Positions 1 through 64,000 of a stretch of 64,000 bases of DNA are shown here, piece after piece. Position 1 is the first letter of the stretch, and each line of letters starts with the position of its first letter. The stretch is from Anaeramoeba ignava BMAN (taxonomy: Eukaryota > Protista > Anaeramoebae), in contig JAPDFW010000066.1 of assembly GCA_028826165.1 (NCBI GenBank), positions 186,001 to 250,000 of the forward strand. Reading direction: 5' to 3'. Below the pieces are notes generated by a model. It saw only the letters and a program-made list of their open reading frames with translations, searched no databases and was not told the origin of the DNA. Made by a program: the position numbers and the translations under genes.

Positions 1-1856
1 ATTTTATTTATAATTTTATTTATTATTTTATTTATATTTTTATTTATAATTTTATTTATAATTTAATTTATAATTTAATTTATAAATTTAATTTATAATT
101 TTATTTATATTTTTATTTATAATTTTATTAATTTTATTTATAATTTTATTTATAATTTTATTTATATTTATATTTATATTTTTATTTATAATTTTATTTA
201 TAATTTTATTTATATTTTTATTTATAATTTAATTTATAATTTTATTTATAATTTAATTTATAATTTTATTTATATTTTAATTTATAATTTTATTTATAAT
301 TTAATTTATAATTTTATTAATAATTTTATTTATAATTTTATTTATAATTTTATTTATAAATTTAATTTATATTTTATTTATAAATTTTTATTTATAATTT
401 TATTTATTATTTTATTTATTATTTAATTTATAATTTTATTTATAATTTAATTTATAATTTTATTTATAATTTAATTTATAATTTTATTTATTTATAATTT
501 ATATTTATAATTTTATTTATAATTTTATTTATAATTTTATTTTATTTTTATTTTATTTTAAATTTTATTTATAATTTAATTTTATTTAATTTTTAATTTA
601 TATTTTTAATTTATAATTTTATTTATAATTTTATTTATTATTTTATTTATATTTTTTTTTTATAATTTTATTTATAATTTTTATTTATTATTTTATTTTA
701 TTTTTTATTTTAATTTTTATTTTATAATTTTAATTTATAATTTAATTTATAATTTTATTTTTTTTATAATTTAATTTATAATTTTATTTATAATTTTATT
801 TATAATTTTTTTATAATTTTATTTATAATTTTATTTTTATTTTATTTTATAATTTTTTATTTATAATTTTATTTATAATTTTATTTTATAATTTTATTTA
901 TAATTTTTATTTATAATTTTATTTATAATTTTATTTATAATTTTATTTATAATTTTATTTATAATTTTATTTACAATTTTATTTATATTTTATTTTATAA
1001 TTTTATTTTTAATTTATATTTTATAATTTTATTTATAATTTTATTTATAATTTTATTTATAATTTTATTTATAATTTTATTTATAATTAGTATTTTATAA
1101 TTTATTTATATTTTTAATTTTATTATATTTATATTTTATTTTATAATTTTATTTATATTTTTATTTATAATTTTATTTATAATTTTATTTATAATTTTAT
1201 TTTATAATTTTATTTATAATTTTATTTATATTTTTTATTTATAATTTTATTTATATTTTTATTTATAATTTTATTTATAATTTTATTTTAATTTTATTTA
1301 TAATTTTATTTATAATTTTAATTTATAATTTTTATTTTATTTATAATTTTATTTATAATTTTATTTATAATTTAATTTATAATTTAATTTTAATTTATAA
1401 TTTTATTTTTAATTTAATTTATAATTTTATTTATAATTTATTTTATTATTTTATTTTTATTTTTAATTTTATAATTTAATTTATAATTTAATTTATAATT
1501 TTATTTATAATTTTATTTATAATTTTATTTATAATTTTTATTTATATTTTAATTTATAATTTTATTTTAATTTTATTTTATTTTTAATTTATATTTTAAT
1601 TTATAATTTAATTTATAATTTTATTTATAATTTAATTTATAATTTTAATTTATAATTTTATTTATAATTTTATTTATAATTTTATTTATAATTTTATTTA
1701 TAATTTTATTTATAATTTTATTTATAATTTTATTTATAATTTAATTTATAATTTTATTTATAATTTTATTTATAATTTAATTTATTATTTATTTATAATT
1801 TAATTTATAATTTTATTTATAATTTAATTTATAATTTAATTTATAATTTAATTTAC
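1..1856. repeat. Degenerate A/T-only tandem repeat (~12-nt TTTATTTATAAT unit), probably an intron of the lectin gene
   Basis: Almost no G or C over 1.85 kb. It begins at a minus-strand GT donor (GAT|GTAAAT, 1856). Confidence 0.85.
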
Positions 1857-2072
1857 ATCTTTTGCCCAAATTGAACCTATAGGTTCTTTATTTCTAGTTA
1901 AAATAATTTTGTCTGGTTGTGTGAATATATTTTGACTTTCCCAAGTTTGCATTATATTACTAAATGAAGGAGGGATAAGAGAAAGTTTTGGATTTAAAAC
2001 TGGTGGTATTTTTGTTTGATTTGAAAATAGAATTTGAAAAAAAACAAAAAAGAAAAGAAACAAAATTTTCAT
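1857..2072 (-). CDS. First exon of a secreted L-type (legume-like) lectin, VIP36/ERGIC-53 family; gene continues beyond the left edge of the window
   Basis: Signal peptide MKILFLFFFVFFQILFS followed by SLIPP...W...IILT...GSIW, which resembles the N-terminus of the lectin_leg-like domain. Ends at a GT donor. Confidence 0.55.
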
Positions 2073-2166
2073 TTTGAAAAAAGAAAAAAATGAAAAAAAC
2101 AAAAAACAAAAAAATTATTTTATTTTTTTTTTTCATTTTTTAGTTTCATTTAAAAAAATTACAAAA

Positions 2167-4072
2167 ATGAATTATTATAAAGATAATTTTAAAAATAAAC
2201 GAGTTTATGTTATTGGACATTTAAATCCTGATGTTGATTCAATTATTTCAACTATTCTCCTTGATCACTTATTAAAATGGTTGGGAATTGATGCAAAAGG
2301 AGGTTTGAAAACATAAAAAGAATAAAAAAGAACAAAACAAAAAAAAACAAATGCTTAAAAAAATTTTTTTTTTCTCAATTTAATTTGAATAAATGAAATA
2401 AAATTAATAAATAAATTAATAGTTAAATTAATGCCTTGCGATGAAATAACAAAAAAGGTTTGTTCAAAACCAAAAAAAATCAATCATAATTTTTTCTCAA
2501 TTAATTTTTTTTCAATTATATTTTTTCAATTAATTTTAGGTAACTAAAGAAATAAAATGTCCAGAAGTTCCATTAATTAAATTAGAAGAATTAAAAAATC
2601 AAAATGTTTTTTTGGTTGATCATACATATAAAGTTAATTCTTTAGGAGAACATTTCCCTGCAAACAGTAAATTAAAATTAAAATTAAAATCAAAATTAAA
2701 ATTAAAATTAAAATTAAAATTCATTTATAAAATTATAATTATAATTAAAATTAAAATTAAAATTCAAATTAAAATTAAATTTAAAATCAAAATCAAAATT
2801 AAAATTAAATTTAAAATTCATTTATAAAATTAAAATTAAAATTAAATTTAAAATTAAAATTAAAATTAAAATTAAAAAAAATAAAATTAAAATTAAAAAT
2901 TAAAATTAAAATTAAAAATCAAAATTAAAATTAAAATTAAAATTAAAATTAAAATTCAATCTAAAATTAAAATTAAAATTAAAATTAAAATTAAATTTAA
3001 AATTAAAATTAAAATTAAAATTAAATTTAAAATTAAAATTAAAATTAAAATTAAAATTAAAATTAAAATTAAAATTCATTTATAAAATTAAAATTATAAT
3101 TAGATTTAAAATTAAAATTATAATTAAAAAATTTAATTTAAAAATTAAAATTAAAATTAAAATTAAAATTAAAATTAAAATTAAAATTAAAATTAAAATT
3201 AAATTTAAAATTAAAATTAAAAATTAAAATCAAAATCAAAATTAAAATTAAAATTAAAATTAAATTTAAAATTAAAATTAAAATTAAATTTAAAATTAAA
3301 ATTAAAATTAAATTTAAAATTAAAATTAAAATTAAATTTAAAATTAAAATTAAAATTAAATTTAAAATTAAAATTAAAATTAAAATTAATATTAAATTTA
3401 AAATTAAAATTGATTTATAAATTTAATCAAAAAAATAGTTGTCGGAATTATTGGACATAATACAAGAAATGGAACTGAAGCAGCACCTTTTATTAGAAAT
3501 GAAAATGTTGGATGTGCAGCAAGAATTGTTCTTGACTTAATGGAGAAAGAGAAATATCCAGTAAGTGATGAAGAATATTTATGGACTTTGTATGCATTAG
3601 GAGTAGATTCATGTTGCTTATTAAAAACAAACACAACAAAAGAAGATATTGAACTAGCAAATAAATGGGAAAAAAAACTTGGAATTTCTCATCAATTTTT
3701 AAAAGAAAAACTTTATTTGAATGCAATTTTAATGATAAAGTTGAAAAGTTATCAAAACATGGTTTTAAAAATCATTTATTTAGTGAAAAATATCATGGAT
3801 TTTCTTCTTATGTTGAAATACTTCATGTTAATGATCAAAAAATGAAGAAAATTGAGGAAATTCAAAATTATATTCGAAATCATAATGGAATTGATCTTTG
3901 GGTTTTTTTTGTTTATAATTATGAAGATGCAACAACTACTGTTTGTTATTCAGGTCCTTTAGCAAAACATTTCTCAACAACAACTCATGATTCTATTATT
4001 TCTCGAGGTGCTACAGTTATTCCTGAAATTAGAAAAAAAATAGCAAATTTAATTGAATCAAAACAAATTTAA
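2167..4072 (+). CDS. DHH-family phosphoesterase, family II Mn-dependent pyrophosphatase (PpaC)-like, copy 1; 4 exons (2167-2302, 2423-2457, 2540-2666, 3439-4072); 1-nt frameshift at ~3710
   Basis: Motifs VYVIGHLNPDVDSI, VFLVDH, NVGCAA, GVDSCCL and C-terminal SRG..VIP. GT-AG introns keep the frame. One A is missing in an A-run relative to the paralogues. Confidence 0.8.
2667..3438. repeat. (AAAATT)n microsatellite filling intron 3 of DHH copy 1
   Basis: Hexamer repeat between donor GTAAATT and acceptor AATAG. Confidence 0.9.
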
Positions 4073-4391
4073 TTTTCTTTTAATTATTTCAATTCTAATT
4101 CCAATTCTAATTCTAATTCCAATTTTTCTTTTCATTTTTATTTTATTTTTTTGAAGCAATTATTTAGCTAATTTTACATTTGTTTTTCTTTTTCTTTTTC
4201 TTTTTCTTTTATAGAAAATAAAATTCTCAAAAAATAAAAATTTAGATCAAAAATAATTCTTTTTCTCTTTTCTTCTTATTTTCCAATTTTTTAATAATTA
4301 AATAAATTTAATAAAGAAAATACAAACAAAATTATTTTTTCGTTTTTTTCAATTTCATTTTTTTTAGTTTCATTTAAAAAAAATTACAAAA

Positions 4392-5539
4392 ATGGATTAT
4401 TATAAAAATAATTTTAAAAATAAAAGAGTTTATGTTACTGGACATTTAAATCCTGATGTTGATTCAATTATTTCAACTATTTTAATGGAAAAGTTATTGA
4501 AATGGTTGGAAATTGATGCAAAAGGAGGTTTGAAAACATAAAAAAAATAAAGTCAAAAACAATTTTTTTTGATGTTAAATTGAATTAACAAATTTAATAC
4601 TTAAAATAAATTAATAGTTAAATTAATGCCTTGCGATGAAATAACAACCAATGTTTGTTTTGAAAATAATTTGGATTTTTATTTTATTTTATTATATTTA
4701 TTAAATTTTTAGGTAACTAAAGAATTAAAATGTCCAGAAGTTCCATTAATTAAATTAGAAGAATTAAAAAATCAAGATATTTTTTTGGTTGATCATACAC
4801 ATCCAATTAGTTCTATAGGCGAAAATTTTCCTGCAAACAGTTAAAAAATTTTAATATAAAAATTAACCCAAAAATTTAATATAAAAATCTAATCAAAAAA
4901 ATAGTTGTTGGAATTATTGGACATAATCCGTTAAATGAAGTCGCAAAAGCACCTTTTATTATAAATGGAAATGTTGGATGTGCAGCAAGACTTATTATTG
5001 ACTTAATGGAGAAAGAGAAATATCCAGTAAGTAATCAAGAATATTTATGGGCTTTATATGCTTTAGCAATAGATTCATGTTGCTTATTAAAAACAAGTGT
5101 AACAAAAGAAGATATTGAATTAGCAAATAAATGGGAAAAAAAACTTGAAATTTCTCATCAATTTTTAAAAGAAAAAACTTTATTTGAATGTGATTTTAAT
5201 GATAAAATTGAAAATTTAGCAAGAAATGGTTTTAAAAATCATTTATTTAGTGGAAAATATCGAGGATTTTCTTCTTATATTGAAATGATTAATGTTAATG
5301 ATCAAAAAATGAAGAAAATTGAAGAAATCCAAAATTATATTGAAAAAAATAATGAAGTAGATCTTTGGATTTTTTTTGTTTATAATTTTGCAGATCCAAC
5401 AACTACTATTTATTATTACGGTCCTTTAGCAAAACATTTCTCAACAAAAACTTATAATTCTGTTGTTTCTCGAGGAATTACAGTTATTCCTGAAATTAGA
5501 AAACAAATAACAAATTTAGTTGAATCAAAACAAATTTAA
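4392..5539 (+). CDS. DHH-family PpaC-like phosphoesterase, copy 2 (4 exons, intact)
   Basis: Same motifs and intron positions as copy 1; the ORF 5006-5539 is the C-terminal half. Confidence 0.8.
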
Positions 5540-5566
5540 TTTTCTTATTCTTTTAATTTCTTTTCC

Positions 5567-5817
5567 AAAATCAAAATGAAAATCAAAATCAAAATCAAAA
5601 TCAAAATCAAAATCAATATCAAAATCAAAATCAAAATCAAAATCAATATCAATATCAAATTCAAATTCAAAATCAAAATCAAATTCAAAATCAAAATCAA
5701 ATTCAAAATCAATATCAAAATCAAAATCAAAATCAAAATCAAAATCAAAATCAAAATCAAAATCAAAATCAAAATTCAAAATCAAAAATCAAAATCAAAA
5801 TCAAATCACTCAAAAAT
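5567..5817. repeat. (AAAATC)n microsatellite
   Basis: Direct hexamer repeat between the end of copy 2 and the transposon left end. Confidence 0.9.
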
Positions 5818-5885
5818 CACTTGTTCATAAGATTTTTTTTAATGATTTTTTTCTTTTAGATTTTGTTTTTTTTTGGCCGATTCAA

Positions 5886-5985
5886 TCCAGTTTGTTCACA
5901 GAACGGTTTTTGTTCACAGAACAGTTTTTTGTTCACAGAACGATATTTGTTCACTGAACAAACTAGGTTCACTGAACAAACTGGA
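5886..5985. repeat. Subterminal array of five GTTCAC(A/T)GAAC palindromic motifs
   Basis: Motifs start at 5894, 5912, 5931, 5949 and 5967. The block is bounded by the inverted repeat TCCAGTTTGTTCA / TGAACAAACTGGA. Confidence 0.85.
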
Positions 5986-6141
5986 AGGATTCAACAAGAA
6001 AAAATAAAGAAAAAAAAATAAGAAAGTTTGTTGGTTTAGAAAAAAGAGACTTTGAAAAAAGAAAAGAAAAGAAAAAAATTGAAAAAAAAATTGAAAAAGA
6101 ATTCCAAAAAGAATTCCAAAAAGAATTCCAAAAAGAAATGA

Positions 6142-8690
6142 TTAAATTTTTTGATCTTTTAATTGATTAATCAAATTTTGGATGTTATCTTGAGAAAGCA
6201 TTCTCATATCCACTTTCGATGTTTTTTCATCTTCTGTTTTTTTTAGAACAGAATTATTTTCCACCTTTTTCAAATTTGGAGAGGAATATTCTGATTTGTT
6301 TTGATTTGAATTCTTCATCTTTTCATAAAGTAATATCGATGCATTGTTTGTGAGATATTTTATTGGATTGCGGACAAAAAAAACTTTGGAATCATCGAAT
6401 ACATACCACTTACCATTTTCCTTATTCCTCCATAACGCAATGTAATGCCCTCCTTCAATGAAATCCCCAAATGAAGAATCGCACCTCTTAAAGAATATTC
6501 TTTGTTATCTTTATTGATTGATTTATTGGTTTCATTTAATAAATCTTTTTCTTTTAAATTATTAGATTGATTTGTTTCAATAGATTCAATTCTTTCATCA
6601 ATTTGATTTGATTGAGAAGATTTTGATGAGAAAACTAATGGAGATAAATAAAGTGATTGATTGTTTTCATTTAATAAATCTTTTTCTTTTAAATTATTAG
6701 ATTGATTTGTTTCAATAGATTCAATTCTTTCATCAATTTGATTTGTTTCAATAGATTCGATTCTTTCATCAATTTGATTTGTTTCAATAGATTCAATACT
6801 TTCATCAATTTGATTTGATTGAGAAGATTTTGATGAGAAAACTAATGGAGATAAATAAAGTGATTGATTGTTTTCATTTAATAAATCTTTTTCTTTTAAA
6901 TTATTAGATTGATTTGTTTCAATAGATTCAATTCTTTCATCAATTTGATTTGTTTCAATAGATTCAATTCTTTCATCAATTTGATTTGATTGAGAAGATT
7001 TTGATGAGAAAATTAATGAAGATGAATAAAGTGATTGATTGTTTTCATTTAATAAATCTTTTTCTTTTAAATTATTAGATTGATTTGTTTCAATAGATTC
7101 AATTCTTTCATCAATTTGATTTGTTTCAATAGATTCAATTCTTTCATCAATTTGATTTGTTTCAATAGATTCAATTCTTTCATCAATTTGATTTGATTGA
7201 GAAGATTTTGATGAGAAAACTAATGAAGATGAATAAAGTGATTGATTGTTTTCATTTAATAAATCTTTTTCTTTTAAATTATTAGATTGATTTGTTTCAA
7301 TAGATTCGATTCTTTCATCAATTTGATTTGTTTCAATAGATTCAATTCTTTCATCAATTTGATTTGATTGAGAAGATTTTGATGAGAAAACTAATGAAGA
7401 TGAATAAAGTGATTGATTGTTTTCATTTAATAAATCTTTTTCTTTTAAATTATTAGATTGATTTGTTTCAATAGATTCAATTCTTTCATCAACTTCATTC
7501 AATGGAGAGGATTGATTTGAAAGAATGCAAGGAGGTGTTGAAATATCTTGAATATTATGAGGAATCCAATTTTCTTCTCCATATTTCTGTAAATCAATTT
7601 TGTCGGGAATCACCACAGGCCAATTTTTCTTTCCAGTGCTTCCATCTTTTTTCCACCAAAATCTTTCTAAATGAATCCAAAAAAAATGAGGAAAATCTGA
7701 AATGAAGAATTGTTGAGATTGGGATTTTGGGGTAATCTCTTCTTTTTTTGGAATATCTTTCGGTGATGTAACTTCATGAGTTTTCGATTGGTGCTTTCTT
7801 CCTTTTCTTCTTCTTTTTGTTTTTTGTGATAGTTTTTCCGTCTTCTCAGGAGTTAAAGAAATTTCTTTTTTGGTTGAGGATGTGCTTTTTTCGTTAGAGT
7901 TCTTTTTTTTTTGTTTTTTACATTCTTCACAAATCATCAAATTGTCTTTGTCAGGATGAATCAAAGAGAAATAAGAATCAATTAAATCAAGAAGATGAAT
8001 TGGAGTATTTGCAACTGGAGGATGTAAGAAGATATTCAAGCTGTAAAATTCTGTTTCAGTTTCAGACCAATGACCACATGCTCCATAAAAAATCTTCTTC
8101 TTTTCCAATCCACAATGTGCTCTAATCAAACTCAGATTTTCTCTTATCGGAATTTGAATTTTTTTGTTAAGTGTATTATTGTAAAGTAATAACGAGTCAA
8201 TCCGGAGATTATCTAACAAAAAATCCAGAAAATCATGAGCATCTTTTTGAGAGGGATTTGGACCATACATTTTTTTAATTCCCTTCAAATCGTTTTGTAA
8301 GGATACGAGATATGAATATGGAACAGTCTCTTTTTCGGTTTTCATCTGTTGGGAGATGGACAAAATTTTTTCAACTAAAGATCCTTGAGGATTGAAAAAT
8401 TCTCCATTTGTTCTCAGGAAGAGTTGAAGAACAGAAATCATGAAACAAGAGTTGCAAGGATTTTCTATTCCCTTTAAAGATAGATTACTTTTTTGAGAAG
8501 GACCATCACTTTTCAAATCAGAGAAAAAATTGAGTGCAGGTTTTTTGGGAGAATTACTTTGAGAGAGAGGATTAGAAGGAGGTTCCACAATCATTTTTCG
8601 TTTCTTTGATTGTTTTGGAGAGTTTTCCTTTGATGATCTATCTGATTTTGGAGAGTCTTGAATGAGTTCAAACTGATCATCTTCGTTCAT
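6142..8690 (-). CDS. Transposon-borne ubiquitin-specific protease (peptidase C19/USP) with internal tandem-repeat insert; 1-nt frameshift at ~6449
   Basis: Cys box GIENPCNSCFMISVLQ, QKDAHDFLDFLLD, zinc ligands ACGH/CEEC, WIHLERF. The His box YSLRGAILHLG...GHYIALWR...WYVFDDSKV...ASILLYEK is completed in the -1 frame, ending at TAA 6142-6144. Confidence 0.85.
6530..7490 (-). repeat. Coding tandem repeat of 36-nt (QIDERIESIETN) and 99-nt (QSNNLKEKDLLNENNQSLYSSSLVFSSKSSQSN) units
   Basis: About 12 short units and 5 full plus 1 partial long units, nearly identical at DNA level. Confidence 0.9.
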
Positions 8691-9796
8691 TTGAAAGAAG
8701 TTGGGTTTGTTGCATTTAGATTTTTTTTTTCGGGGGTTGTAGTTCTTAAAGGAGTTAGTTGAATTTTTAGATTTGTGAGTGCGGAACAAATTACAAATAA
8801 TAATCGGAAATCGGTCATATTTCCTCTGAATTTAAACATCATGATGTTGAATTTTTTAAGGCGTCCATAGTAGTTTTCCACAAGAACTCTATCTGAAGAG
8901 AGTTTGATATTATTGTGGATTTTTTCTTGAGTAAGGCCGGCTGAAGTTTTTTTAGATGGTAATACAGCCTTACATTGTTTTTGAATGCCTTGAAATCCAG
9001 AGTCAGCAAGAATCTGATATCTTTTTTTCTTTTTTTTCCCATTTTTATCACGAACTATCTCCTCACATTTATCAGACCAATCCGTAATATCCCATACAAT
9101 CTTGTCATGGTTTTTTCCCGTTACTCCTGGCACACAATCCATCATGAGACCATTTGGGGAGTGGATTGTTAAACTTTTGAAGCAATACTTCTTGTGCTTT
9201 CCTGAGTATGTCAGTGTTCTTTTCGTTTTATTTTTTGGTCGTTGTATTTCTTGAACAGTGGCATCCACTACAGCCATCGCTTTTGGATAATTTGGAAAAC
9301 CGATATTATTCTTTTTTTGCTCTTTCTTTGATATCCAATGTATTTGATTTTTGAGCTCATTATGAATCGGAACTAAAAATTTTTTGAATAAGCTATTCAT
9401 ACTTGCTCGAGGAATTCCAAAAAAAACTTCCATTGAAGAAAACGGGCAATAGGAATAAAAGTAAGTAAGGAAAGCTAACCAAATATCTTCGGGAGATAAA
9501 ATTCTTTTTGGTGCTCGTTGATTAAAAGGAGAAATGATATCCTTCACATATTGAAAGCAATCCAAAAAACCTTCCAAAGTATATCCAGTCAGTACTTTCA
9601 ATAACAGAGGATAAGTTGAGGCTAATTTCCAATTGATTCGAATTCCATAAGGATTTTGAGGATCAATAATTACTTTATCCTCTTCTAAAATATCATCGTG
9701 CCCAAATTCATAGACTCTAGATCTTATAATCTTGCGATTCGTTTTAAAATGCTGAATCATTTCAAAAATTTTTTTGTCAATTTGAAATGGTTTCAT
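8687..9796 (-). CDS. DDE transposase, DDE_Tnp_4 (IS5/ISL2EU/Harbinger) family with N-terminal HTH
   Basis: HTH region LSPEDIWLAFLTYF...FFGIPRAS. Catalytic core VVDAT..IQRP, YSGKHKKY, G.NHD, ILADSGFQG, P.KK, RVLVENYYGRLK. Confidence 0.9.
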   Translation of the reverse strand: MKPFQIDKKIFEMIQHFKTNRKIIRSRVYEFGHDDILEEDKVIIDPQNPYGIRINWKLASTYPLLLKVLTGYTLEGFLDCFQYVKDIISPFNQRAPKRILSPEDIWLAFLTYFYSYCPFSSMEVFFGIPRASMNSLFKKFLVPIHNELKNQIHWISKKEQKKNNIGFPNYPKAMAVVDATVQEIQRPKNKTKRTLTYSGKHKKYCFKSLTIHSPNGLMMDCVPGVTGKNHDKIVWDITDWSDKCEEIVRDKNGKKKKKRYQILADSGFQGIQKQCKAVLPSKKTSAGLTQEKIHNNIKLSSDRVLVENYYGRLKKFNIMMFKFRGNMTDFRLLFVICSALTNLKIQLTPLRTTTPEKKNLNATNPTSFK

Positions 9797-10201
9797 GCAA
9801 AAAATAAGAAAAAAAACAAATTAAGAAAAAAAATTAAGAAAAAAAATAAAGAATTAGGGAATAAAATTTTTATTTTTTTTTTCAAATAAAATAGATTGGA
9901 AAAAAGAGATAGATGATTGAAAAAAAGAGATAGAAGAATTAGAAATAGAGATAGAAGAATTAAAAATAGAGATGAAAATTCTCAAAAAAAAAAGCTATGA
10001 ACAGGATTCGTTCTCTGAAAGGAATTGAACTAGCGAATTTTGAATTGTCTGTAATTCAAAATTACAATGGAAAAAAAAAAAAAAATTTTATGAACAAGTC
10101 TAATAATTAAATAAATTTAATAAAGAAAATAAAAACAAAATTATTTTTTCGTTTTTTTCATTTTCATTTTTTTTAGTTTCATTTAAAAAAAATTATAAAA
10201 A

Positions 10202-11354
10202 ATGGATTATTATAAAAATAATTTTAAAAATAAAAGAGTTTATGTTACTGGACATTTAAATCCTGATGTTGATTCAATTATTTCAACTATTTTAATGGAA
10301 AAGTTATTAAAATGGTTGGGAATTGATGCAAAAGGAGGTTTGAAAACATAAAAAAAATAAAAAAATTCAAAACAATTTTTTTTGATGTTAAATTGAATTA
10401 ACAAATTTAATACTTAAAATAAATTAATAGTTAAATTAATGCCTTGCGATGAAATAACAACCAACGTTTGTTTTGAAAATAATTTGGATATTTATTTTAT
10501 TTTATTATATTTATTAAATTTTTAGGTAACTAAAGAAATAAGATGTCCAGAAGTTCCATTAATTAAATTAGAAGAATTAAAAAATCAAGATATTTTTTTG
10601 GTTGATCATACACATCCAATTAGTTCTATAGGCGAAAATTTTCCTGCAAACAGTTAAAAAATTTAATCCAAAAATTTAATATAAAAAATTTAATCAAAAA
10701 ATTTAATCCAAAAAAATAGTTGTTGGAATTATTGGACATAGCCCAGCATATCAAGCCGCAAAAGCACCTTTTGTTATAAATGGAAATGTTGGATGTGCAG
10801 CAAGACTTATTATTGACTTAATGGAGAAAGAGAAATATCCAGTAACTAATCAAGAATATTTATGGGCTTTATATGCTTTAGCAGTAGATACATGTTGCTT
10901 ATTAAAAATAAGTGTAACAAAAGAAGATATTGAATTAGCAAATAAATGGGAAAAAAAACTTGAAATTTCTCATCAATTTTTAAAAGAAAAAACTTTATTT
11001 GAATTCAATTCTAATGATAAAATTGAAAATTTAGCAAGAAATGGTTTTAAAAACTATTCATTTAGTGGAAAATATCGAGGATTTTCTTCTTATATTGAAA
11101 TGATTAATGTTAATGAAGAAAAAATGAAGAAAATTGAAGAAATCCAAAATTATATTGAAAAAAATAATGAAAGTGATCTTTGGGTTTTGATTGTTTATAA
11201 TTTTGCAGATCCAACAACTACTATTTATTATTACGGTCCTTTAGCAAAACATTTCTCAACAAAAACTTATAATTCTGTTGCTGATCGAGGAACTACAATT
11301 ATGCCTGAAATTAGAAAAAAAATAACAAATTTAGTTGAATCAAAACAAATTTAA
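10202..11354 (+). CDS. DHH-family PpaC-like phosphoesterase, copy 3 (4 exons, intact)
   Basis: Closely similar to copy 2, including introns and ~100 nt of upstream sequence. Confidence 0.8.
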
Positions 11355-11773
11355 TTTTCTTATTACAAAAAAGGAAAAATAAAAAAGATCTAAATCAAAA
11401 TTATTTTTTTTTTTTAATCAATTTTTTTTTTTTAATTTTTAATTTCCTTTTTCTTATTTCTGTTAAATCCCCCAGAATAAAAATAAATCTTTTATTAAAA
11501 ATTTAAAATAAATAAATAATAAAATAATTTTAATTAAATTTTTTAATTAAAAAAAAAAAACGTCTTTTTATTTAAAATAATAAAAAAAAAAATTTTTTTT
11601 GTTTTAATTCAAAAAGCAAAAAAAAAAATGAAAAAGAAAATTTACTTCATTTTTTTCTTTTATTAATTATCTTAATGTAATAATAAATTCCAACTAAAAT
11701 AATTAATAATTATTATTTATTATTCATTTTTTTATTTTTAATAATAATAATAATAACAATAATAGAATAAGAG

Positions 11774-15807: not shown

Positions 15808-18800
15808 ATGGCAGATAAAATTATGAGAGAAAGTTCCAAAGATGATCTTTTTAGTTTAACAACAACACTTAAAGAAAAAGAAACTGATACAAAAACAAAA
15901 ATTGATAAGAAATCATTTTCTGGAAGAATTTTTCAATTAATGAACAATGCTGCTTATTCCTTTTTGCTTGTTTGTGCTTATGGTGAATTGTTTCCTGAAA
16001 GAGATCTTGTTGTTGCTCATTCTTTTGGAGACGGTTATTTTTGTCATGATTATGATGAAAGTTTTGCAATTACTCAAGAAATGATTGATAAATTAAAAGC
16101 AAAAATGAAGGAATTTATTGATTCTGATGATGAATTAGAATGTAATTTTTTTTTTTTAAAATCCAATTCAATTTAAAATCTAAATTAAAATTAAATTTAA
16201 AATTCAATTTAAAATCTAAATTCAATTTAAAATCTAAATTCAATTTAAAATCTAAATTAAATTTAAAATCTAAATTAAATTCAATTTAAAATCTAAATTA
16301 AATTCAATTTAAAATCTAAATTAAATTCAATTTAAAATCTAAATTAAATTCAATTTAAAATCTAAATTAAATTCAATTTAAAATCTAAATTAAATTCAAT
16401 TTAAAATCTAAAATTAAATTCAATTTAAAAATCTAAATTAAATTCAATTTAAAATCTAAATTAAATTCAATTTAAAATCTAAATTAAATTCAATTTAAAA
16501 TCTAAATTAAATTTAAAATCTAAATTCAATTTAAAATCTAAATAAAATTCAATTTAAAATCTAAATTCAATTTAAAATTCAATTTAAAATCTAAATTCAA
16601 TTTAAAATCTAAATAAAATTCAAATTAAAATCTAAATTCAATTTAAAATTCAATTTAAAAATTAAAATTAAAATCTAAATTAAAATCTAAATTAAAATCT
16701 AAATTAAAATCTAAATTAAAATTAAAATCTAAATTCAATTTAAAATCTAAATTAAAATCTAAATCTAAATTCAATTTAAAATCTAAATAAAATTCAATTT
16801 AAAATCTAAATAAAATTCAATTTAAAATCTAAATTAAATTTAAAATCTAAATTAAAATTCAATTTAAAATCTAAATTAAATTTAAAATCTAAATTAAAAT
16901 TCAATTTAAAATCTAAAATTAAATTTAAAATCTAAATTAAAATTCAAATTTAAAATCTAAATTAAATTTAAAATCTAAATTAAAATTCAATTTAAAATCT
17001 AAATTAAATTTAAAATCTAAATTAAAATTCAATTTAAAATCTAAATTAAATTTAAAATCTAAATTAAAATTCAATTTAAAATCTAAATTAAATTTAAAAT
17101 CTAAATTAAAATTCAATTTAAAATCTAAATTAAATTTAAAAACAGGTTCAAGTATGGAAAGAGAAACTTTAGTTAAATATTTCCAAAAAAAAAATTTTGA
17201 AGAAAAAATTCAAATTCTTAAAGCTTGGAGAGTAGATAATGTTCCAATAATCAAATTTAGAAATTTTATTGATTATCGAATAGAAAAAATCCAAAATGAT
17301 AAGAAGTATTTGCAAGTTTTTGACTTGGTAAATTAAAATTAAAATTTAAATTATTATTAAAATTAAAATTAAAATTTAAATTATTATTAAAATTAAAATT
17401 AAAATTAAAATTATTATTAAAATTAAAATTAAAATTAAAATTAAAAATTAAAATTAAAATTATTATTAAAATTAAAATTAAAATTAAAAATTAAAATTAA
17501 AATTAAAATCAAAATTAAAATTAAAATTAAAATAAAAATTATTAAAATTAAAATTAAAATTTCAAAAAAAAAAGTTAAAATTCCATTACGGTGTTTTATT
17601 AAGATTTCCAACCTTAACAAATCCAGATGAACTATTGGAGTTCCGAGATCGACCAATAATGTGGGAATTAATTCAAGAACACAAATCATGGGGATCTATT
17701 ATAAATTGTAGTTATATTGGAGATATAAACAAAATGATTTTCACGAAAGAAATTGAAAGTTTAAAATGGGTTGCTGAAGGATTACACGACAAAAAAATCG
17801 GGTTTATCGCAGATGAGCTTATCAAGGGATTCCCACAGAAGAGAATAGTAACGATAGCTGGGCCTTCAAGCAGCGGGAAGACTACATTTGCGAAACGTCT
17901 TGCGATCCACATTCGAGTGAATGGATACACAACAAAAGTTATTTCAATGGATGACTATTTTTTGGATCGGGAAGAAATGATCGAAGACGAAAACGGAGTC
18001 AAGGACTTTGAATCCATTCTTGCATTAAACTTGAAGCTTTTAGTCGAGCGTCTTGGAAAGCTTGTTAAAGGCGAAAAAGTACCAGAAAGAAAATTCAATT
18101 TTCATCTTGGAAAAGGAGAAGATAATTTCAGTAAGCAAATCCAATTGAATCCAAGAGACTTTATTATTCTGGAGGGAATTCATGGGCTCAATCCCGCTTT
18201 TACTGAGATGGTTGGGTTAGATAAGATATCTCGTATTTATGTCAGTGCATTAACACAATTGAATGTTGACCGTCACCATCGTATTTCCACTTCTGACAAC
18301 AGACTTCTCAGGAGAATGATTAGAGATTATCAATACAGAGGATGGTCTCCTACTGATACCACCGCAATGTGGTCAAAAGTCCGTGAGGGAGAGGAAAAAT
18401 ATATCTTCCCTTTCCAGGAAATGAGTGATTATATGTTTAATTCTGCTTTGATTTATGAATTGCCTGTTCTTGCTACTTATTTAAAACCTTTGTTGGCTGA
18501 AATTGGTGGTGAAAGGGATATTGAGGAAGAAGCTGGAAGGTTGTTAAGATTTTTATCTTTTTTCTATCATTTTCCTGGTGATCGTGTTCCTGGAGTTTCA
18601 ATTATTCGGTAATTTGAAATAAATATAAAATATCAAATATAAATATAAATATTAAATATTAAATAATAAATAATAAATATAAATATTTAATATTAAATAA
18701 TAAATATCAAATATAAAAATAATAAATAAATAATAAATAATAAAAATTAAATTAAATAAATATAAATATAAATAAATAAATATATAAATATAAATATTAA

Positions 18801-24920: not shown

Positions 24921-27900
24921 TTAAAAATGGATTTCCATTCCAAAATGAATCTCAAAAGCTTTTTTAGAATATACTTGAATTTCTTCAGAAAAACGAATAA
25001 CTTCATCCAATTTTGTTGATTCTTCTACAATATTCCAATCTTGGTCTTCATCTAAATATCCCATTTGAAGATTTTGATCAGAAAAAGCTTGTGGGAAAAG
25101 TTTAAGAAGATGACTCTTCAAATCAAGAACAGACAATATTTTTATTTTCGATAAATCAATTCTTGTGTCAAAATTTTTCACAATTTCCACGTGGCGTTCC
25201 ACTTTTTGAGAATTTTCATTTTGTAAAGAAGAAGCAAGAAGATCGAAGAAAGAGACTTTAAGAAATCGTCTGAGATGGTGGTTTCTGAAGGAAAGATTGG
25301 GGTCGAGAATCTCAGGTTCTGTATAAACAGAAAGTTGCGGGGAAGAAGTTGTGCGATCGCAGACTCTTTTCATTCTCTTTCTGAGTTGGGGATCAGCAAG
25401 AGAAAGAGGGGTTTTTTTGCGGAGATTTGGGGTTTCAGTGTCTGCGCCTAGTTTAATCAAGAGAAGGGCAGTGTGAATGTTGTTGCGGATGATTGCGAGA
25501 TGAAGCGGAGTGTTTCCGTCGAGATCCTGAGCATTTATATCGATGCCGCTTTGGAGAAGATCCGGGAGCAGTTGGAAATGTGCGTTTTTGGCAACAAGAT
25601 GAAGACAAGTTTTGCCGTCTCTTCGGATGACATTGGGTCTTCCCGAAGATGCGATCAATAACTTAAATGCCTGCAAACTTCCTTTTTTGCACGCAATATG
25701 GATTGCAGTGTTTCCTTTAGGCGTCAAATCCTGGAAGTTTATGTCTGCGCCACTTGAAATTAGTTGCTCAACAGCACTATCAAATCCAATTCCGCAAGCG
25801 AGATGAAGAACAGTCTTGCTTTTCTTCATCATAGCATCCACATTTGCGCCTTGTTGAATTAGCGCCTTTACTGCGCTGATACTTTTCTGGAGAACTGCAG
25901 TGTGGATCGCAAGTTTTCCGTTTTGATTTGAGAGTTCTAGTTCTGGATCTGCTTGCAAAATAAGCTTGAAAAGCTCGTATTTGCGCTGAATAAGCGCTGC
26001 ATGAAGAGCAGTGTTTCCGTTGTTATCTTTCAAATCGAGGTTGATTCCATTTTTGATAAACAACCAGAAAAATTTTTCGAAAACTTCGAAATCTGTTTTT
26101 AATTCTGAAGGCGGGATGCCAAACTTTTCCTCGGATTCCTGTTCATCGTTTTTGAATTCGAGTGATGGCAAGGATTCATCGAAAGGATATCTCTCGATAA
26201 GCAAGTGAAGCAGGGTTTGTTTCTTGATATTTTTGTGGTTGATATTGACGCCCAATTTGAGCAAGTATTCCATCATTTCCACATTTAGTTGTTTCAACGA
26301 AATATGGAGAATATTCTCTCCAGCAGCGTTTTGCACATGCACATTTGTGCGAACGCGTGACTGAAGGAGAAGCCTGATGATTGACACAGACTGGGTTTCA
26401 ACAGCCAAAAGTAGAAGAGAATTTCCTTTTGAATCTTGGGAATTGACGTCAACTCCTTTTCTGAATAAATAAAGAAAAATAGATTCGCGAAGGGAGGAAT
26501 CTTTGTATTGGGTGTGGAACGCGATATGAAGGGCAGAAAGACCTGCGTTGTTCTTGATATTAATGTCTGCTCCTTTCTCGACAAGTTTCTCCACAAATTT
26601 CAAATTGCCGAGTTCGATAGCTTGCAAAAACGCAGTCATTCCCTTTGAATCGCGCACATCAAGTCCTATTCGTTTATTGTTCACAAGAAAATCAAATACT
26701 TCCTGATTCCCTTCGTTTACTGCAAGATGCAATATTGTTTGTCCTTCCTTGTTTTGTGAGTTTGCGTTGCATCCTGTTGATATTAAAAGATCCAAAATTT
26801 GTGTTGAAACTTCCTTTGAATACGAATAAAATAATATGTGCGAAAATAACGCTTCTTCTTTTGACTGGTTATTTCCAATTGCTCCATCTCGAATTAAAAT
26901 GCTTTTATTTTCTTCGTATGAAAACACAACTTTAATTGCATTCATTTTGTTTTTTTCCAAAAGAAATCTTAGATATTCCACATTTTGCTCGTCAATTGGC
27001 CGAGAAATACTGTTCATTTCAAGAAAATTCACAATATTTATATCTCGACTCACATTCCCATTTTCCATTAATTCGTGGAATACTGATTCAATAAATTTAT
27101 TGAGTAAATCCACACCAATTTTTTTGTACTGATTTTGCGTTTTCTGTAGTTTTCTTTCCATTACAGAAAGCTTGCTCTTTTCTTCCTCTCTTTGCTTTTT
27201 TTGCTCTTCATTCATCAAAAATTTGTTGAGATATTTGGGGAATCTGGGCATAATAATCAACGGAAATTTCTTGATTAATTTCATTACTATTTGATGAAAA
27301 TCCAGAATCTTTTTTTTTAATTCCCACGAAGATCCAAGAAATAAAACATTCAATTCATATGATTTTTTCAGTACAATATCTTTTAATTTGGCTCCTATTG
27401 AATTGTCTTGTTTTTTATTATTCATGCTATATGAAACCTCGCATTCATATCCCTTTTGTTTAGGATCATAATGTTCAATGTAGATTGTATGTTTATTCCC
27501 TTCTTTGCTTCTTAAATATTGCGAAATGTGGAAAATATTCACGAATTTTATCATTTCTTCTTGATTTTCTGATTTCATTTCAATTATCCGATTTTCAACT
27601 TGCAATCTTATTTTTAATTGCTTTTCTTCTGTGTCTGATGAAATGAATGTCAAACCTAAAGAGACAATCGGAAATGAATGTTGAATATTATATTTAACTA
27701 ATCGAGAGATGATTTCTTGGTAATTTTTCTTTTGCATTAATTGTTTCATTTCAGGAATATTGATTTTCTCATCCAATTTATAGAAATGAATAAATTGATT
27801 CGTAAATCCAATAATTTTGTTTTGTGATCCTTTTTTGGATATTTGTTGTGTATCAAATATCCCCATAAAAATTAAATCCCCCAGATATTGAATATTTTCT

Positions 27901-30543: not shown

Positions 30544-33148
30544 TCATTTCAATCCTCGATTAACTTTTATTTGATCAATTTGTTTCTCTAATTCATCAAA
30601 TTTTTTCCCCAACTTTTTTAAAAAACAAAAACATAAATTAATTTTTAAAAAAAAATAATTTTAAAAATTTTTAAATTTTACATTTCGATAAAAATCAATA
30701 TGAGAAAATAATAATTGTTTGCAAATTGATTGAAATTCTATTGAACGTTGAATTCTAAAGTTTTCAAATTCTGCTAATGTAATACTAGATTGAGCTGCAA
30801 ATTTTCTTTTTTTTTCTTGAAATTGTTTTTCTTTTTTTTCTGCTTTTTTATTTTTCTTTCTTGTTTTTTGGATTGAATTTAATTTAGACATAAAATCAGA
30901 ATAAGAAGTCTCAAAAGTACGAAAAACCTCACAAAATTTAGTAGAAGTAGTTGAATAATCTAAGAGATCTGAAATAATTTGAGATTCTTGTTCAAGCTTT
31001 AAAATTTATATTTATAATTTAATAATTAAATAATTTATATTTATAATTTAATAATTTATATTTAAATTCCACAAACTTTATTCTGTATCAATATAATTCG
31101 ATCTTCAAATAATTTTTGAAGAGAAATGATAATATTTTTTAATTGTTGAGAATCTTCAGGAATTTGTTGTTCATCTCTCCAATCAAAACCTATATTGCTT
31201 GATTGATTTAAAACTTCAAATAAATTTTCACTATTTTTTGAAAATTGATTCATTGAAGAAATCATTTTTTGGAATTTTTCTTGAACATTTAAAATTGCTT
31301 GTCCAAATTTTTCGACATGATTTTGAAACTTGTCAGAATGATCCTTAAAAAATTTTGCGCGTGAAGTTTCATCTTGAAGAATAGAAACATCAACATCAAC
31401 CTTTTCCCAAAAAGGTCGAGAAGTTTTCTCGATAATTTTTTGATTTGAATACCAATTATTTTCCTTATCATTCTGGATAAAATCAAGAAACAAAGAAGTT
31501 TGTGATAAAATTGGATGAGATAAAATTTGCTTGAGAAACCTTTCAAGCATTTTGCGTCGATTTTCAAGAAAGGTTTCTTTGAATTTTCCAGTAACTTTTT
31601 TTTCAGGTAATATTGGAAATGGAATATTAGGAAAAAGTCTTTTTAGTTGTGTTTGAAGCCATAAAAAATCTGAATATCGATGATAAACCTTGTAATTTCC
31701 TGGTTGAGTTTCAATTACATAAGTTGAGTATTTTTTAAACTTCCCTCGCTTTTCTGTTCCTGTTATTGAAATTGTTGCTTCTGATTTTTCTTGGTTTTCC
31801 CAAAGAAAATTCTTATTGATTTGAAATTTTTTGTTTATAAGATCTTGGAATTTTGAATCTTGTTGAATTTCTGATGTTTGATGAATAGATTCTTCACTTG
31901 ATCTTTCTAAATCTATTGAATTTCTTGGTGTTGTTTGACTTTCTTTACTGGATATGCTTGATCTTGTTGTTTTTTGATTTGTGTTTGGATTCACTTCGCT
32001 TGAATCACTTGAATCAATTATTTCACTTGAATCATTAGCAAATGATTTTCTTTCTTGTGAATCATTTGTTTTATTTTCATTTTCAAAATCAACTGAATTT
32101 GAATGTTTTGATTTATGGTTGATTTTTTCTTTTTCTTTTTTAATTTCTTTTTGAATTTCTTTTTGAATTTCTTTTTGTTCTTCAATTTCAATTTGTTTTT
32201 CATTTTCTTTTTCTTCATTATTTTGTTGTTCTATTTTTTTAACATAACTAATTTATTAAATGAATTTGAATTTGAATTTTGAATTTTGAATTTTGATTTT
32301 TGAATTTTGATTTTGAATTTAATTTTTACTTATATGGAAAAATTCCAATATTTTTTGGATTACTCTTTATATAACCACTCCACCATCCTTTTATTTCAAC
32401 AAAAAATAATTAAATTAAATAGAAAAAGTTTGTATCTTTTGAAAAAGTTTGTATCTTTTAATATTTCATTTGATTTTTAATTTTAATTTGATTTGATTTT
32501 ATTTTGATTTTGATTTTGAATTTGATTTTGATTTGATTTTTATTTTGAAATTGATTTTGATTTTGAATTTGAATTTTATTTTGAATTTGAATTTGAATTT
32601 GATTTTAATTTTGATTTTTGAATTTTGATTTTGAATTTAAAATTGATTTTGAATTTTATTTTGATTTTGATTTTGATTTTGAATTTTAATTTTGATTTTG
32701 ATTTTGATTTTGATTTTTAATTTGATTTTGAATTTGATTTTGAATTTGAATTTGATTTTGATTTTTGAATTTTATTTTTAATTTGATTTATAATTTGAAT
32801 TTGAATTTGAAATTGAATTTTAATTTTAAATTTGAATTTTGAATTTGATTTTGATTTTGATTTTAAATTTGAATTTTGAATTTGATTTTTATTTTGAATT
32901 TGATTTTGAATTTGATATTAAATTTGGATTTGAATTTGAATTTGATTATTTTGAATTTGATTTTGATTTTGAATTTGATTTTGAATTTGAATTTGAATTT
33001 GATTTTGAATTTGATTTTGAAAATTTAAATTATTACCTCCTTGATTACTTAAAACACAAATTTCATCATTTTTATGAATTGAAAGTTCTTCTGATTCTTG
33101 TGCTTCATAAGTATATAATGCAATTACTGAAAATAAAGGTTTCGACAT
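30544..33148 (-). CDS. SH3-PX-BAR sorting nexin (SNX9/18/33-like), multi-exon
   Basis: SH3 ALYTYEAQESEELS...GWLY...GIFP..YV. PX VYHRYSDFLWL...PILPEK...ENRRKMLERFL. Helical BAR-like C-terminus. Confidence 0.85.
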
Positions 33149-33779: not shown

Positions 33780-36700
33780 TTATAAATGATTTTGATTTTC
33801 ATCTTGATTTTCATCTTCATTAGAAAAATTTTCTAATTTGCAATTATCACAAATTCGAACAGGATGAAAGAAATGCTGATCAATCAAAGGAGTACGAAAC
33901 AAACTACAAGAATCACAAACAACTTTACCACATTTCCTACAATGATGCTTTCTCAAAATAAGAGAAAAAGGTTTTCCACAAATAGAACATTTATGAATGG
34001 AAGAACTAGGAGTCCAATGGCTTTTATCACCTTGTTCAAGAAAACCTAATTGCAAAACATCTCCTGAAGAATTTCCAATATAAACGGAAATATTTGAATC
34101 ATTGAAAATACAAGTTATCGGAGAATCAACTGTTTGAATCACTTGAATTTCATTAAGTGTTCTTACTAACTTTTTAGAAACATCCATATTTTTATCAACT
34201 TCACTTGATTTCGAAATTTCAACCATTTGTGATTGAACTGAGAAAAATCTAATCATTCCATCGCGATGACCACTGATGTATAAATGTCTTGGATCCCAAT
34301 TCGGAAAATGAGTCATTGACAAACTGAAAATATCATCATTTTTGTTCTTGGAAATTGATTTTTCACACCATAAATGCCCGTTAATTGTACAGATACGAAT
34401 TGTTGATTTTGAACATGTAACAATTTCTCCAGAGAAATCATTGATTGAAATATTTCGCACTTTGTGTTGAAAAGTCGGTAATTGACGTGTATATCGAAAT
34501 CTATTTAAATCCCAAATGATACATGTTCCATCTTTTGATCCACTCGCAACAATATTAAATGCAACAGAAATTGCTAAGCATGCTACTGCTTTTGAATGTC
34601 CATAAAGTTTTTGAATTAATTGGAAATGAGGCTTGATTATTTTCTGTTGGTTATTTTGTGGATTAAGGTTATCGATGCATTTGGGAATTTTGGATGATAT
34701 TTTTTGAAGTTGTGGATCCTTTGTTTCAAATCCAAATTCCTTGTTAAATAAAAGCAAGTTTTGGAGATATGTGAATGGTTTGTCTTCCTGATCCTCATTC
34801 TCTATCACTAATTTTCGTGTTTTCTTGTTTATATTTTCTGTTAATGATTGTATTTTTATAACTTTCTTTTGAATTTTCCAAATGCTTATGATTGAATCTT
34901 TTCCTCCTGTGATTAAGATATGATTGCCATCTATATAACAAACTGATGTTATTTCTGTCAGATGAAGTTTTTCTTGAAATCTTATTGTTTTGTTGTTTTC
35001 AGAATTGATTATTTTGAGTGAATTATCACTATTTTTAAATGATATTTGATTTTGTGGGTTTTCACGAATAATTCTTTTATATTTCCCAACAACAAAAAGT
35101 TTTCCGTTTGAGATATAAATATCTCCTATTGGTTCTTTAATTTTTTTAATTGTATTCAATTTTAATAAATGTGGATAAATAATTGGAATAAATTTTGAAT
35201 TTGGATTGAATGGTGCAATAACTGATTTATTTTGAAGTTTTTGATAATTTGTTCCTTTTGTAGTTCTATTTTTGTTTTTTTGTTGGATTTGATTATGTAT
35301 TTTTGAATTTTTCGAAGGATTATCACTATCATCATTTTCATTTTCATTTTCATTTTCATTTTCATTTTCATTTTCATTTTCATTTTGATTTTCATTTTCA
35401 TTTTCAAATTGATTTTGATTTTGATTTTCATTTTGATTTTGATTTTGATTTTCATTTTGATTTTCATTTTGATTTTGATTTTGATTTTGATTTTGATTTT
35501 GATTTTGATTTTGATTTTGATTTTGATTTTGATTTTTGATTTTTATTTTCATTTTCATTTTGATTTTGATTTTGATTTTGATTTTGATTTTGATTTTGAT
35601 TTTCATTTTCATTTTGATTTTGATTTTCATTTTGATTTTGATTTTGATTTTGATTTTCATTTTCATTTTGATTTTCATTTTGATTTTCATTTTGATTTTT
35701 ATTTTGATTTTGATTTTGATTTTGATTTTGATTTTGATTTTGATTTTGATTTTGATTTTGATTTTGATTTTGATTTTCAAATTGATTTTGATTTTGATTT
35801 TCATTATTTTCAAATTGATTTTGATTTTGATTTTGATTTTGATTTTCATTTTCATTTTCATTTTCAAATTGATTTTGATTTTCATTTTCATTTTCAAATT
35901 GATTTTGATTTTCATTTTCATTTTCAAATTGATTTTGATTTTCATTTTCATTTTCAAATTGATTTTGATTTTCATTTTCATTTTGATTTTCATTTTGATT
36001 TTGATTTTGATTTTTATTTTTATTTTGATTTTGATTTTTATTTTCATTTTCAAATTGATTTTGATTTTGATTTTGATTTTCTTTTTTCGGATATGAAATG
36101 TAAAAGAAGGTATAATTTTATCAACACTTTGAAAAAATCTAGATTTAATATGTTTTTCAGATTCTTTTTTTGGAATTCTATCAATATAATTATTATATTC
36201 TTGAAAAATATTATTTTTTTTAATATTTGAAATTTCTTGAGAATTTGTTATTGAATTTTGATTTTGATTTTTGGAATAATATTCAGTCAATGGATTAGAT
36301 TCGTTTTTGGAAAATGAAGACAAACGAAAGCACCTTCTTGAAGAATGTGGTTTAGTAAATAATTGTTTTGGTGTTTGACCGAAATTATTGATTTGAGAAA
36401 TCTTTGAAATGAGTTCAGTTTGGTCTTGAATTTTATTAAGTTTAACAGATCCTCCATAAGTAAGATAATAAAAAACATTCATAGCTCTTTCAGCATATTT
36501 CCCGCGTTGTTTGAATCCAAATATCAAATCAATCCAATGATGCAAATTCCTGGAGACATAATCACTTTCCAAAGCTCGTCTTTGTTGAATGATAAACTCA
36601 TAAGGATCATCTTTAGCCCAAGGAGGTAAATGAACATGATTAACAGGAACATCTTCTTGGGAATTGATACCGAAATCAAAGTTGTTTGAATTGATCAAAA

Positions 36701-62907: not shown

Positions 62908-63714
62908 TTATTTATCTGTTTTAATATAAAAAAGAATATAAGCGTTTGGATCAACAATTTCTTTTTCTGAAACTTCTGAAATTGAAGTATCATCTATATG
63001 AACCCAATTACCAGTCCATTTTAAAGCAGAACAAGTATAATGTCCTTCAATCGGTGATTGACCAATATGATAAATAACAGAAACCAAATTATAAATGTGT
63101 TCTTTTTTTCCTTTTTTATGTAATTCAGAACTTATTATTTTTTTTGGAATAGTTAATTTTGTTGGAAAATTAATTGCTTTATGAACTTTAAATGCTCCAG
63201 TTTTTTCTGAAAATCTAAATCTTTTTAAATGGAGAATAAGAATAACTGGTAATTGATGAATTTTTGTTTTTTTTTGGGCTCCAATCTAATTTTGATTTTG
63301 ATTTTGATTTTGATTTTAATTTTGATTTTGATTTTGATTTTGATTTTGATTTTGATTTTGAATTTGATTTTGATTTTGATTTTGATTTTGATTTTGATTT
63401 TGATTTTGAATTTGATTTTGATTTTGATTTTGAATTTAATTTTGAATTTGATTTTAATTTTTAATTTTGAATTTGATTTAAATTTTAAAAAAAACATTTT
63501 GTTTTGTTGTTTCATCAGTATAATCTCTTAAATTTTCTGGGTCAGAAAAATCAATTAAAGCATCCTCAATTGAAGAAATATGAAATCCATTAATATTAAT
63601 AGGTAAAATCATAAAAGGTTCAAAAGATATTAAAGGTTTCATTCCATTTGGTACAATTTTACTTTTTAAAGTTCCTCCAAAAATATCTCTAATAATGGTT
63701 TTTTTGGGGATGAT
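62908..63714 (-). CDS. 3' exons of a host ubiquitin-specific protease, USP10/Ubp3-like (exons 63714-63496, 63285-62908); 5' part lies outside the window
   Basis: TIIRDIFGGTLKS...FEPF..L.I.I...SIEDAL, LPVILILHLKRF, SVIYHIG...EGHY...WVHIDD...AYILFY. Not present in the ORF track; read manually. Confidence 0.85.
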
Positions 63715-64000
63715 CTATTAATTTTGATTTTTAATTTTAATTTGAATTTGAATTTGAATTTGAATTTGAATTTTAATTTGAATTTGAATTTGATATTGAT
63801 TTTTATTTTGATTTTGAATTTGAATTTTGAATTTAATATTGATTTTGATTTTGATTTTGATTTTGATTTTAATTTTAATTTAAATTTAATTTTGAATTTT
63901 AATTTTGATTTTGATTTTAATTTGATTTTGATTTTAATTTTGATTTTAATTTTAATTTTGATTTTGATTTTGATTTTGATTTTGATTTTGATTTAATTTT

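Follow-up and report, generated by a model that had tools for sequence, protein, structure and literature searches.

A low-copy IS5/ISL2-like DNA transposon of Anaeramoeba ignava with a transposase most likely joined to a ubiquitin-specific protease domain

The 64,000-nucleotide stretch of Anaeramoeba ignava BMAN DNA analysed here (contig JAPDFW010000066.1, positions 186,001 to 250,000; hereafter the window, on contig C67 of the 42.8-Mb assembly) carries a low-copy, IS5/ISL2-like transposon with terminal inverted repeats (TIRs). As preserved in the window, the element occupies positions 5812 to 10101 and is read on the minus strand. Its borders follow from a near-identical copy on contig C91, with which sequence identity runs from 5812 to 10100 or 10101 and beyond which the flanks differ. 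The element most likely holds one gene, in which the transposase is joined to a ubiquitin-specific protease (USP, peptidase family C19), and not two. A DNA search of the genome matches the element at C67, C91, and C21. The C21 match was rejected as a third insertion; it shares both junctions and a 6.3-kb overlap with the start of C91, at contig ends, and represents either a duplicate assembly of the C91 locus or an allele of it. The assembly contains two insertion sites (C67 and C91), and the element has been recently mobile, with recent insertion at both.

In the window as assembled, the transposase lies in an open reading frame (ORF) of 369 amino acids (8687-9796, minus strand) that matches DDE_Tnp_4 (PF13359) with an E-value of 5.8e-27, and USP/UCH coding sequence is found at 6142-8789 on the same strand. 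A sequence-only reading of this locus had described two intronless co-oriented ORFs, with the USP as a second, cargo gene in place of a Myb/SANT or YqaJ partner. However, the C91 copy encodes transposase and USP in a single stop-free frame of 1022 codons, making the protease a C-terminal domain of the transposase. The corresponding NCBI protein (KAJ5071180.1, 1014 amino acids) carries PF13359, PF01609, and PF00443. In the window this frame is interrupted twice. Break 1 (8721-8730, minus strand) is a run of 10 T where C91 has 11, and it splits the fusion into apparently separate ORFs. Break 2 (6448-6450, minus strand) is a run of three C directly before the catalytic His codon, where C91 and C21 have one additional base and stay in frame. 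The ORF ending at 6360 (809 amino acids) matches the first three quarters of the Pfam UCH model. The His box and FDD motif, placed by the same reading inside the USP ORF, both lie outside it in another frame, from 6453 downwards and past break 2, and therefore the second ORF as assembled lacks the catalytic His. The NCBI gene model for the window copy (1169 amino acids) spans both breaks by apparent false introns and loses the His box, an annotation that is corrected by the present analysis.

Both breaks are likely errors of nanopore assembly. Homopolymers inside repeats remain poorly corrected in nanopore assemblies. The A. ignava assembly was produced from R9 nanopore reads with Illumina polishing (10.1101/2023.03.03.530753). 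Three single-base indels separate the window copy from C91, and each is the loss of a base from a homopolymer run in the window (5907, 6448, and 8721). The two copies also differ by repeat-length changes that keep the frame and, in the coding part outside the repeats, by five substitutions, four of them non-synonymous. A transcriptome ORF of A. ignava in EukProt, P0002, spans residues 319-669 and runs through the transposase-USP junction in a single frame; it carries N371 and I507, which are the residues of the window copy and not those of C91. Because this ORF, with its window-diagnostic residues, reads through the junction, the breaks are probably nanopore errors. The single C91 frame, the homopolymer-loss pattern, and the P0002 read-through together reject the two-gene layout.

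It is nevertheless conceivable that the breaks are genuine, in that the window copy was recently inactivated or that frameshifting on a slippery A-run yields free transposase as well as the fusion. In favour of this, the left terminus of the copy is gone as well, the coding strand has an A-run at break 1, and frameshifting is used by some bacterial members of the IS5 family. We consider this unlikely, given that C91 and the window-type P0002 are both in frame, that the nanopore pattern accounts for three of the three single-base differences, and that break 2 would eliminate the catalytic His. As assembled, the window copy is probably beyond further movement, and the C91 copy looks intact.

The USP/C19 domain and a short tail span 6142-8480 on the minus strand, with the stop codon at 6142-6144. 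In the numbering of the C91 protein, used throughout, the domain contains the oxyanion Asn446, the catalytic Cys451 (8447), a QKDA box (D519), His914 (6447), and Asp931 (6396). On the intact C91 copy, PF00443 is matched above cut-off with an E-value of 6.9e-25. An AlphaFold model of residues 436-975 (pTM 0.64) shows a repeat insert as a low-confidence loop, and its best Foldseek matches are USP2 (E-value 1.9e-16), USP4, Ubp8, and USP36. The features that define a USP are present, specifically the Cys box, QxDA box, His box, and triad Asp/Asn, along with a USP fold in the model. Coding tandem repeats with 36- and 135-bp spacings occupy 6567-7500 (minus strand) within the domain; they are 612 bp longer than in C91 and preserve the frame. 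The domain is very probably an active deubiquitinase.

The transposase part extends from 9796 down to 8731 on the minus strand and carries the catalytic residues D178 (9265), D265 (9004), and E307 (8878). Among aligned fusions, D265 and E307 are present in 23 of 23 sequences and D178 in 22 of 22. The core signature of the PHIS superfamily has been given as D(19-29)K(29)D(18-40)D(11-19)P(18-28)R(3)E (PMC4122938). The C91 protein follows it with D178, lysines at 200-207, D231, D265, P280, R303, and E307. Short TIRs of 15-16 bp and an AT-rich TANTA target likewise agree with the PHIS group, in which short or no target-site duplications are expected. The sequence-only proposal of an IS5-type TIR transposon bearing a USP with its catalytic residues was borne out in these respects, by PF13359, PF00443, and the Cys, His, and Asp residues.

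The ends can be defined because they are shared by the two insertions. A 12-bp word at 5819-5830 recurs inverted at 10088-10099. Alone, this pair is weak, as 1.1 such pairs are expected by chance with one mismatch allowed, and yet the same ends bound the second insertion, within other flanks. In C91, the TIRs are 15 bp long and differ from each other at one position. In the window, the TIR at the 5ˊ (promoter) end is intact (10086-10101, minus strand), with 14 of its 15 bases matching the other end of the C91 copy. Thus the inverted ends noticed earlier are real, although the right end lies at 10100 or 10101 rather than 10099, and the left TIR that was named (5819-5832, plus strand) is a further, internal repeat of the TIR motif and not the terminus. 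In C91 and C21, the complete TIR starts 18 bases before this motif. The left (3ˊ) end of the window copy lacks its outer 11-12 bp, and a host AAAATC microsatellite (5565-5811, plus strand) abuts the truncation. Since the microsatellite and the element's subterminal bases share AAAATC, the end was likely lost by microhomology deletion. Further inside, 18-bp repeats resembling the TIR core (5891-5978, plus strand) vary in number between copies and are probable, putative transposase binding sites. Three other exact TIR matches in the genome (C4 and two on C111) lack element sequence and were dismissed as chance; no miniature inverted-repeat elements were found in the genome via TIR matches.

Empty sites reveal the target. 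The C91 copy sits in a satellite of about 143 bp, of which ten empty units contain TATTA once and the filled site has TATTA on both sides. In the window, the target-site copy is TAATA at 10101-10105 (plus strand) and matches a paralogous empty site at window position 4292 in a tandem host duplication; with the end of the element placed one base further on, the copy would be AAT at 10102-10104. A diverged element on contig C134 appears to end before TATTA on its right flank. The target is TANTA, and the duplication is an odd number of bases, namely 5 bp, 3 bp (ATT, of the ANT type), or 1 bp, because the outer bases of the element could equally be the inner A and T of the target. It is never 2 bp or TWA, and a 2-bp TA duplication is rejected by the empty sites. 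Overall, the element is best explained as an autonomous, IS5/ISL2-related (PHIS) cut-and-paste transposon whose product is one transposase-USP protein.

Within that group, the element resembles PIF/Harbinger and ISL2EU in its transposase superfamily signature, short TIRs, and AT-rich target, but it belongs to neither. The C91 flanks and the ten empty satellite units give TATTA or ATT and not the TWA of PIF/Harbinger, excluding the PIF/Harbinger membership that had been suggested from the sequence. The ORF list and Pfam reveal no Myb/SANT second ORF, and no other ORF or domain, within the element. The ISL2EU hallmarks of a 2-bp AT duplication and GG ends are replaced here by an odd duplication and ends of GA or AG, and neither an N-terminal THAP domain nor a YqaJ ORF is found by Pfam. 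The NCBI name for the window gene model is nevertheless 'thap domain protein'. Spy elements lack a duplication and target AAATTT; a duplication is present here. By description, there is a resemblance to the Pangu group of PHIS and to bacterial IS5 (Han et al. 2015, PMC4482050), which share the DDE_Tnp_4-type transposase and, if the ends are read as A...T, the ANT duplication and an AG-starting TIR (AG or GG in Pangu). However, this fits the 3-bp reading only, and the three sets of junctions, all TANTA, also allow 5 bp. A 5-bp duplication would exceed the 0-4 bp range given for PHIS (PMC10045372). Moreover, Pangu elements have two ORFs, the second with no known motif, and no protease, whereas the present element has a single fused ORF; no Pangu reference was included in our trees.

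The fusion has relatives. On C134 there is a second, diverged transposase-USP gene with 41% identity in the transposase and 32% in the USP, broken within a low-complexity repeat in the assembly. The copies on C91 and C134 both retain the USP, as the sequence-only reading would predict. Word-based protein searches with the 1014-amino-acid protein matched only itself. A HMMER scan and profile search recovered about 20 further distinct proteins with PF13359 and PF00443, mostly of 536-707 amino acids. They lie on short contigs of ENA and Logan, and the names of at least some of these contigs indicate rumen samples. These metagenomic fusions share about 20% identity with C91 and keep the catalytic residues. 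In an alignment of 22 metagenomic relatives with the Anaeramoeba protein, the Cys is conserved in 23 of 23 rows, and the His and the Asp/Asn each in all 21 rows that reach those columns. No TIRs are definable for the metagenomic fusions on their short contigs. Two of them have a TCATTTT motif directly 5ˊ of the ATG, and a Pox_A32 neighbour was also observed. TCATTTT-type motifs are the trichomonad initiator, and Pox_A32 is tied to Mavericks. Because of these two features, the hosts are suggested to be parabasalids.

Other pairings of transposase and protease were observed alongside these fusions. On one metagenomic contig (P0017/P0165, positions 568-3651; four near-identical records), an ankyrin-like N-terminus is followed by a USP and then DDE_Tnp_4, which is the reverse domain order. 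An unrelated Sola2-like repeat family in A. ignava has transposase motifs and then, after an apparent short intron, a USP exon of 302-306 amino acids, in at least nine copies (contigs C48, C96, C59, C80, C128, C1, C105, and C24). Three other PHIS lineages (C35/C98, C74, and C117) carry a SENP/Ulp1-like tail with a profile match to SENP2 (E-value 3.7e-7), in which the His, Gln, and Cys are kept and Asn occupies the usual Asp position. DDE_Tnp_4 transposases with long tails on C126 and C137 and in a second C134 element fall in the same separate clade as these three. At C61:369827-373501 (P0004), a fragment of the nearest transposase relative runs into Sola2-like sequence and adjoins a tyrosine recombinase; NCBI joins the pieces into one 744-amino-acid model, and they are possibly nested or recombined elements.

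The history of the fusion was approached with LG+G4 trees of 77 and 46 transposases and of 36 USP domains, leaving out short fragments and many redundant matches. Repeat and low-complexity inserts were cut out, and the C134 USP pieces were joined with X. In the transposase trees, stand-alone transposases lie between the USP-bearing Anaeramoeba group (100/99) and the metagenomic group (100/100), and the AU test rejects a single clade of both fused groups (p 0.0007). In the USP tree, the Anaeramoeba domains cluster with four presumed host USPs and the Sola2-like USPs of the same genome (97/97), and the nearest neighbour of the element USP is the Sola-type, its sister at 93/89. For a single clade that takes in the metagenomic USPs as well, the rejection is weak (p 0.045, or 0.015 with the Sola-type included). 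These relationships favour a separate capture of the USP in Anaeramoeba, apart from the parabasalid-type fusions. Judging from the USP tree, the domain seems to derive from an Anaeramoeba host USP subfamily and to be related to the USP of the Sola2-like elements. More tentatively, and as something we regard as possible rather than probable, IS5/ISL2-like transposases of anaerobic protists may have captured a USP on two or more independent occasions (perhaps three, one of them with the domain order reversed), with a host-derived USP lineage passed between the unrelated PHIS and Sola2-like superfamilies in Anaeramoeba and sister lineages using an Ulp1-like domain instead.

Because the USP is covalently joined to the transposase, it would most likely act in cis, at the element ends and the target. 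By removing degradative ubiquitin from the transposase or transpososome, it might allow the complex to last long enough to complete the jump. Deubiquitinases borne by Helitrons (VTDs) cleave K48, K63, and K11 chains and have been suggested to keep transposition proteins from being lost to the proteasome (PMC9741609). By analogy with these enzymes, self-protection from ubiquitin-dependent removal is ranked first, at what we would call even odds. The same fusion could instead direct the USP to host proteins at breaks, including ubiquitinated histones, PCNA, and repair factors, thereby steering donor-site repair or dampening damage signalling. SUMO and ubiquitin both govern DNA repair, and related transposases in this genome bear a SENP/Ulp1-like domain instead. 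Such a role was proposed for transposon-borne Ulp1, OTU, and C19 domains (Bao et al. 2010, PMC2836005). The two roles are indistinguishable by sequence, and we regard action at breaks as a near alternative, possible but less probable than self-protection.

The sequence-only reading suggested an element-encoded anti-silencing enzyme, which would strip repressive ubiquitin marks in trans from copies of the element. USPs of the SAGA Ubp8 type do act on histones, Ubp8 is a PDB match of this domain, and host Piwi-domain genes indicate RNA-based silencing machinery. The proposal nevertheless appears decidedly unlikely from the arrangement of the gene, as the USP is fused rather than separate. The family occupies two sites only, with no sign of escape from control, and a genome search for RAWUL (PRC1) domains, made without a positive control, gave no match. 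Less probable still is the possibility that the element picked up the USP by chance, as a passenger that does nothing for it. The small number of sites would fit a passenger, as would the mostly non-synonymous coding differences between the young copies, which are too few to show selection. Yet the catalytic residues are kept between C91 and C134 and in the distant metagenomic fusions, and the layout seems to have had more than one origin.

Several points weigh against a self-protecting fusion protein. P0002 reaches no further than the residues given above, has two residues (F and Y) found in neither the window nor C91, and ends in an unrelated tail, so that it may be a chimeric transcript assembly; it demonstrates an expressed in-frame junction and not a full mRNA. 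Close stand-alone transposases without a protease exist, including one with no tail on C42 of the A. ignava genome, and for this reason the USP is dispensable for transposition in general. The preference for self-protection over a role in repair or chromatin is inference alone. Finally, the tree evidence is limited by the LG+G4 model, long branches, the 93/89 support for joining the IS5 and Sola USPs, and a sample of 16 host USP domains.

Proteases on transposons have precedents. A Trichomonas vaginalis protein, XP_001314237.1, combines a pfam01609 transposase with Peptidase C19 (Bao et al. 2010, PMC2836005, with reference to Gladyshev and Arkhipova 2009), and Helentrons have been reported to carry UCH domains (PMC11417382), contrary to the initial impression that no transposon family with a USP had been described. 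The T. vaginalis protein, known to us by description only, is also an IS5-like transposase and USP/C19 in one metamonad protein, but the parabasalid-like metagenomic fusions form a clade separate from Anaeramoeba in both domain trees. Ginger1 (with an OTU or Ulp1 tail) and Ulp1-bearing Mutator elements similarly place a ubiquitin/SUMO-type cysteine protease on a DNA transposon, and in Ginger1 the protease sits at the C-terminus of the transposase as a domain of it; their transposases are unrelated, and the protease is OTU or C48, not C19. Helentrons with UCH, OTU, or VTD domains (PMC11417382, PMC9741609) carry deubiquitinases that include the UCH/USP class, and VTDs have been shown to be active, but these are rolling-circle elements with RepHel rather than DDE transposases. 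No description of transposase-USP elements as a family with ends and a target site was found in the searchable literature. The layout is therefore of a little-studied kind already noted in Trichomonas, to which the present work adds the termini and target site, evidence of expression, a view of how broad the fusion family is, and signs of repeated capture.

The element lies within a tandem array of three related host genes (window 3400-5540 and 10100-11360) and ends about 100 bp before the start codon of the third, whose first exon has a weak DHH family match (E-value 1.3e-5, below cut-off) and which is possibly a family II pyrophosphatase. Ordinary host genes in the window encode a P-type ATPase (from 11774), an ankyrin protein (24921-27866), and PX (31062-31994) and BTB-TLDc (55880-57064) proteins, and an ORF at 17635-18612 has a phosphoribulokinase/uridine kinase domain. 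Two very long ORFs encode BEACH-WD40-FYVE (33780-43856, 3358 amino acids) and MOR2/PAG1 Furry-like (45599-52924, 2441 amino acids) proteins. At 62926-63837 lies a portion of a further gene that matches UCH and is interrupted by stops or introns; it adjoins no transposase match and is presumably a host USP. UCH is matched 140 times in the whole genome, often within open frames of great length, which is a large USP repertoire for a 43-Mb genome.

Why many DNA transposons bear ubiquitin/SUMO proteases has been asked since at least 2006-2010, and no direct test in a cut-and-paste element was found in the literature searched. The element described here is compact, with a single gene, defined ends and target, and an intact copy, and one Cys mutation would separate the protease from the transposase. 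Its apparently separate origin in Anaeramoeba suggests that control of ubiquitin at the site of cutting has been of repeated benefit to transposons of this kind. If confirmed, repeated USP capture would show selection for the transposase-USP pairing. Together with passage of the USP between elements, it would point to a specific ubiquitin-based host defence against transposases, met by counter-defence modules that can be swapped.

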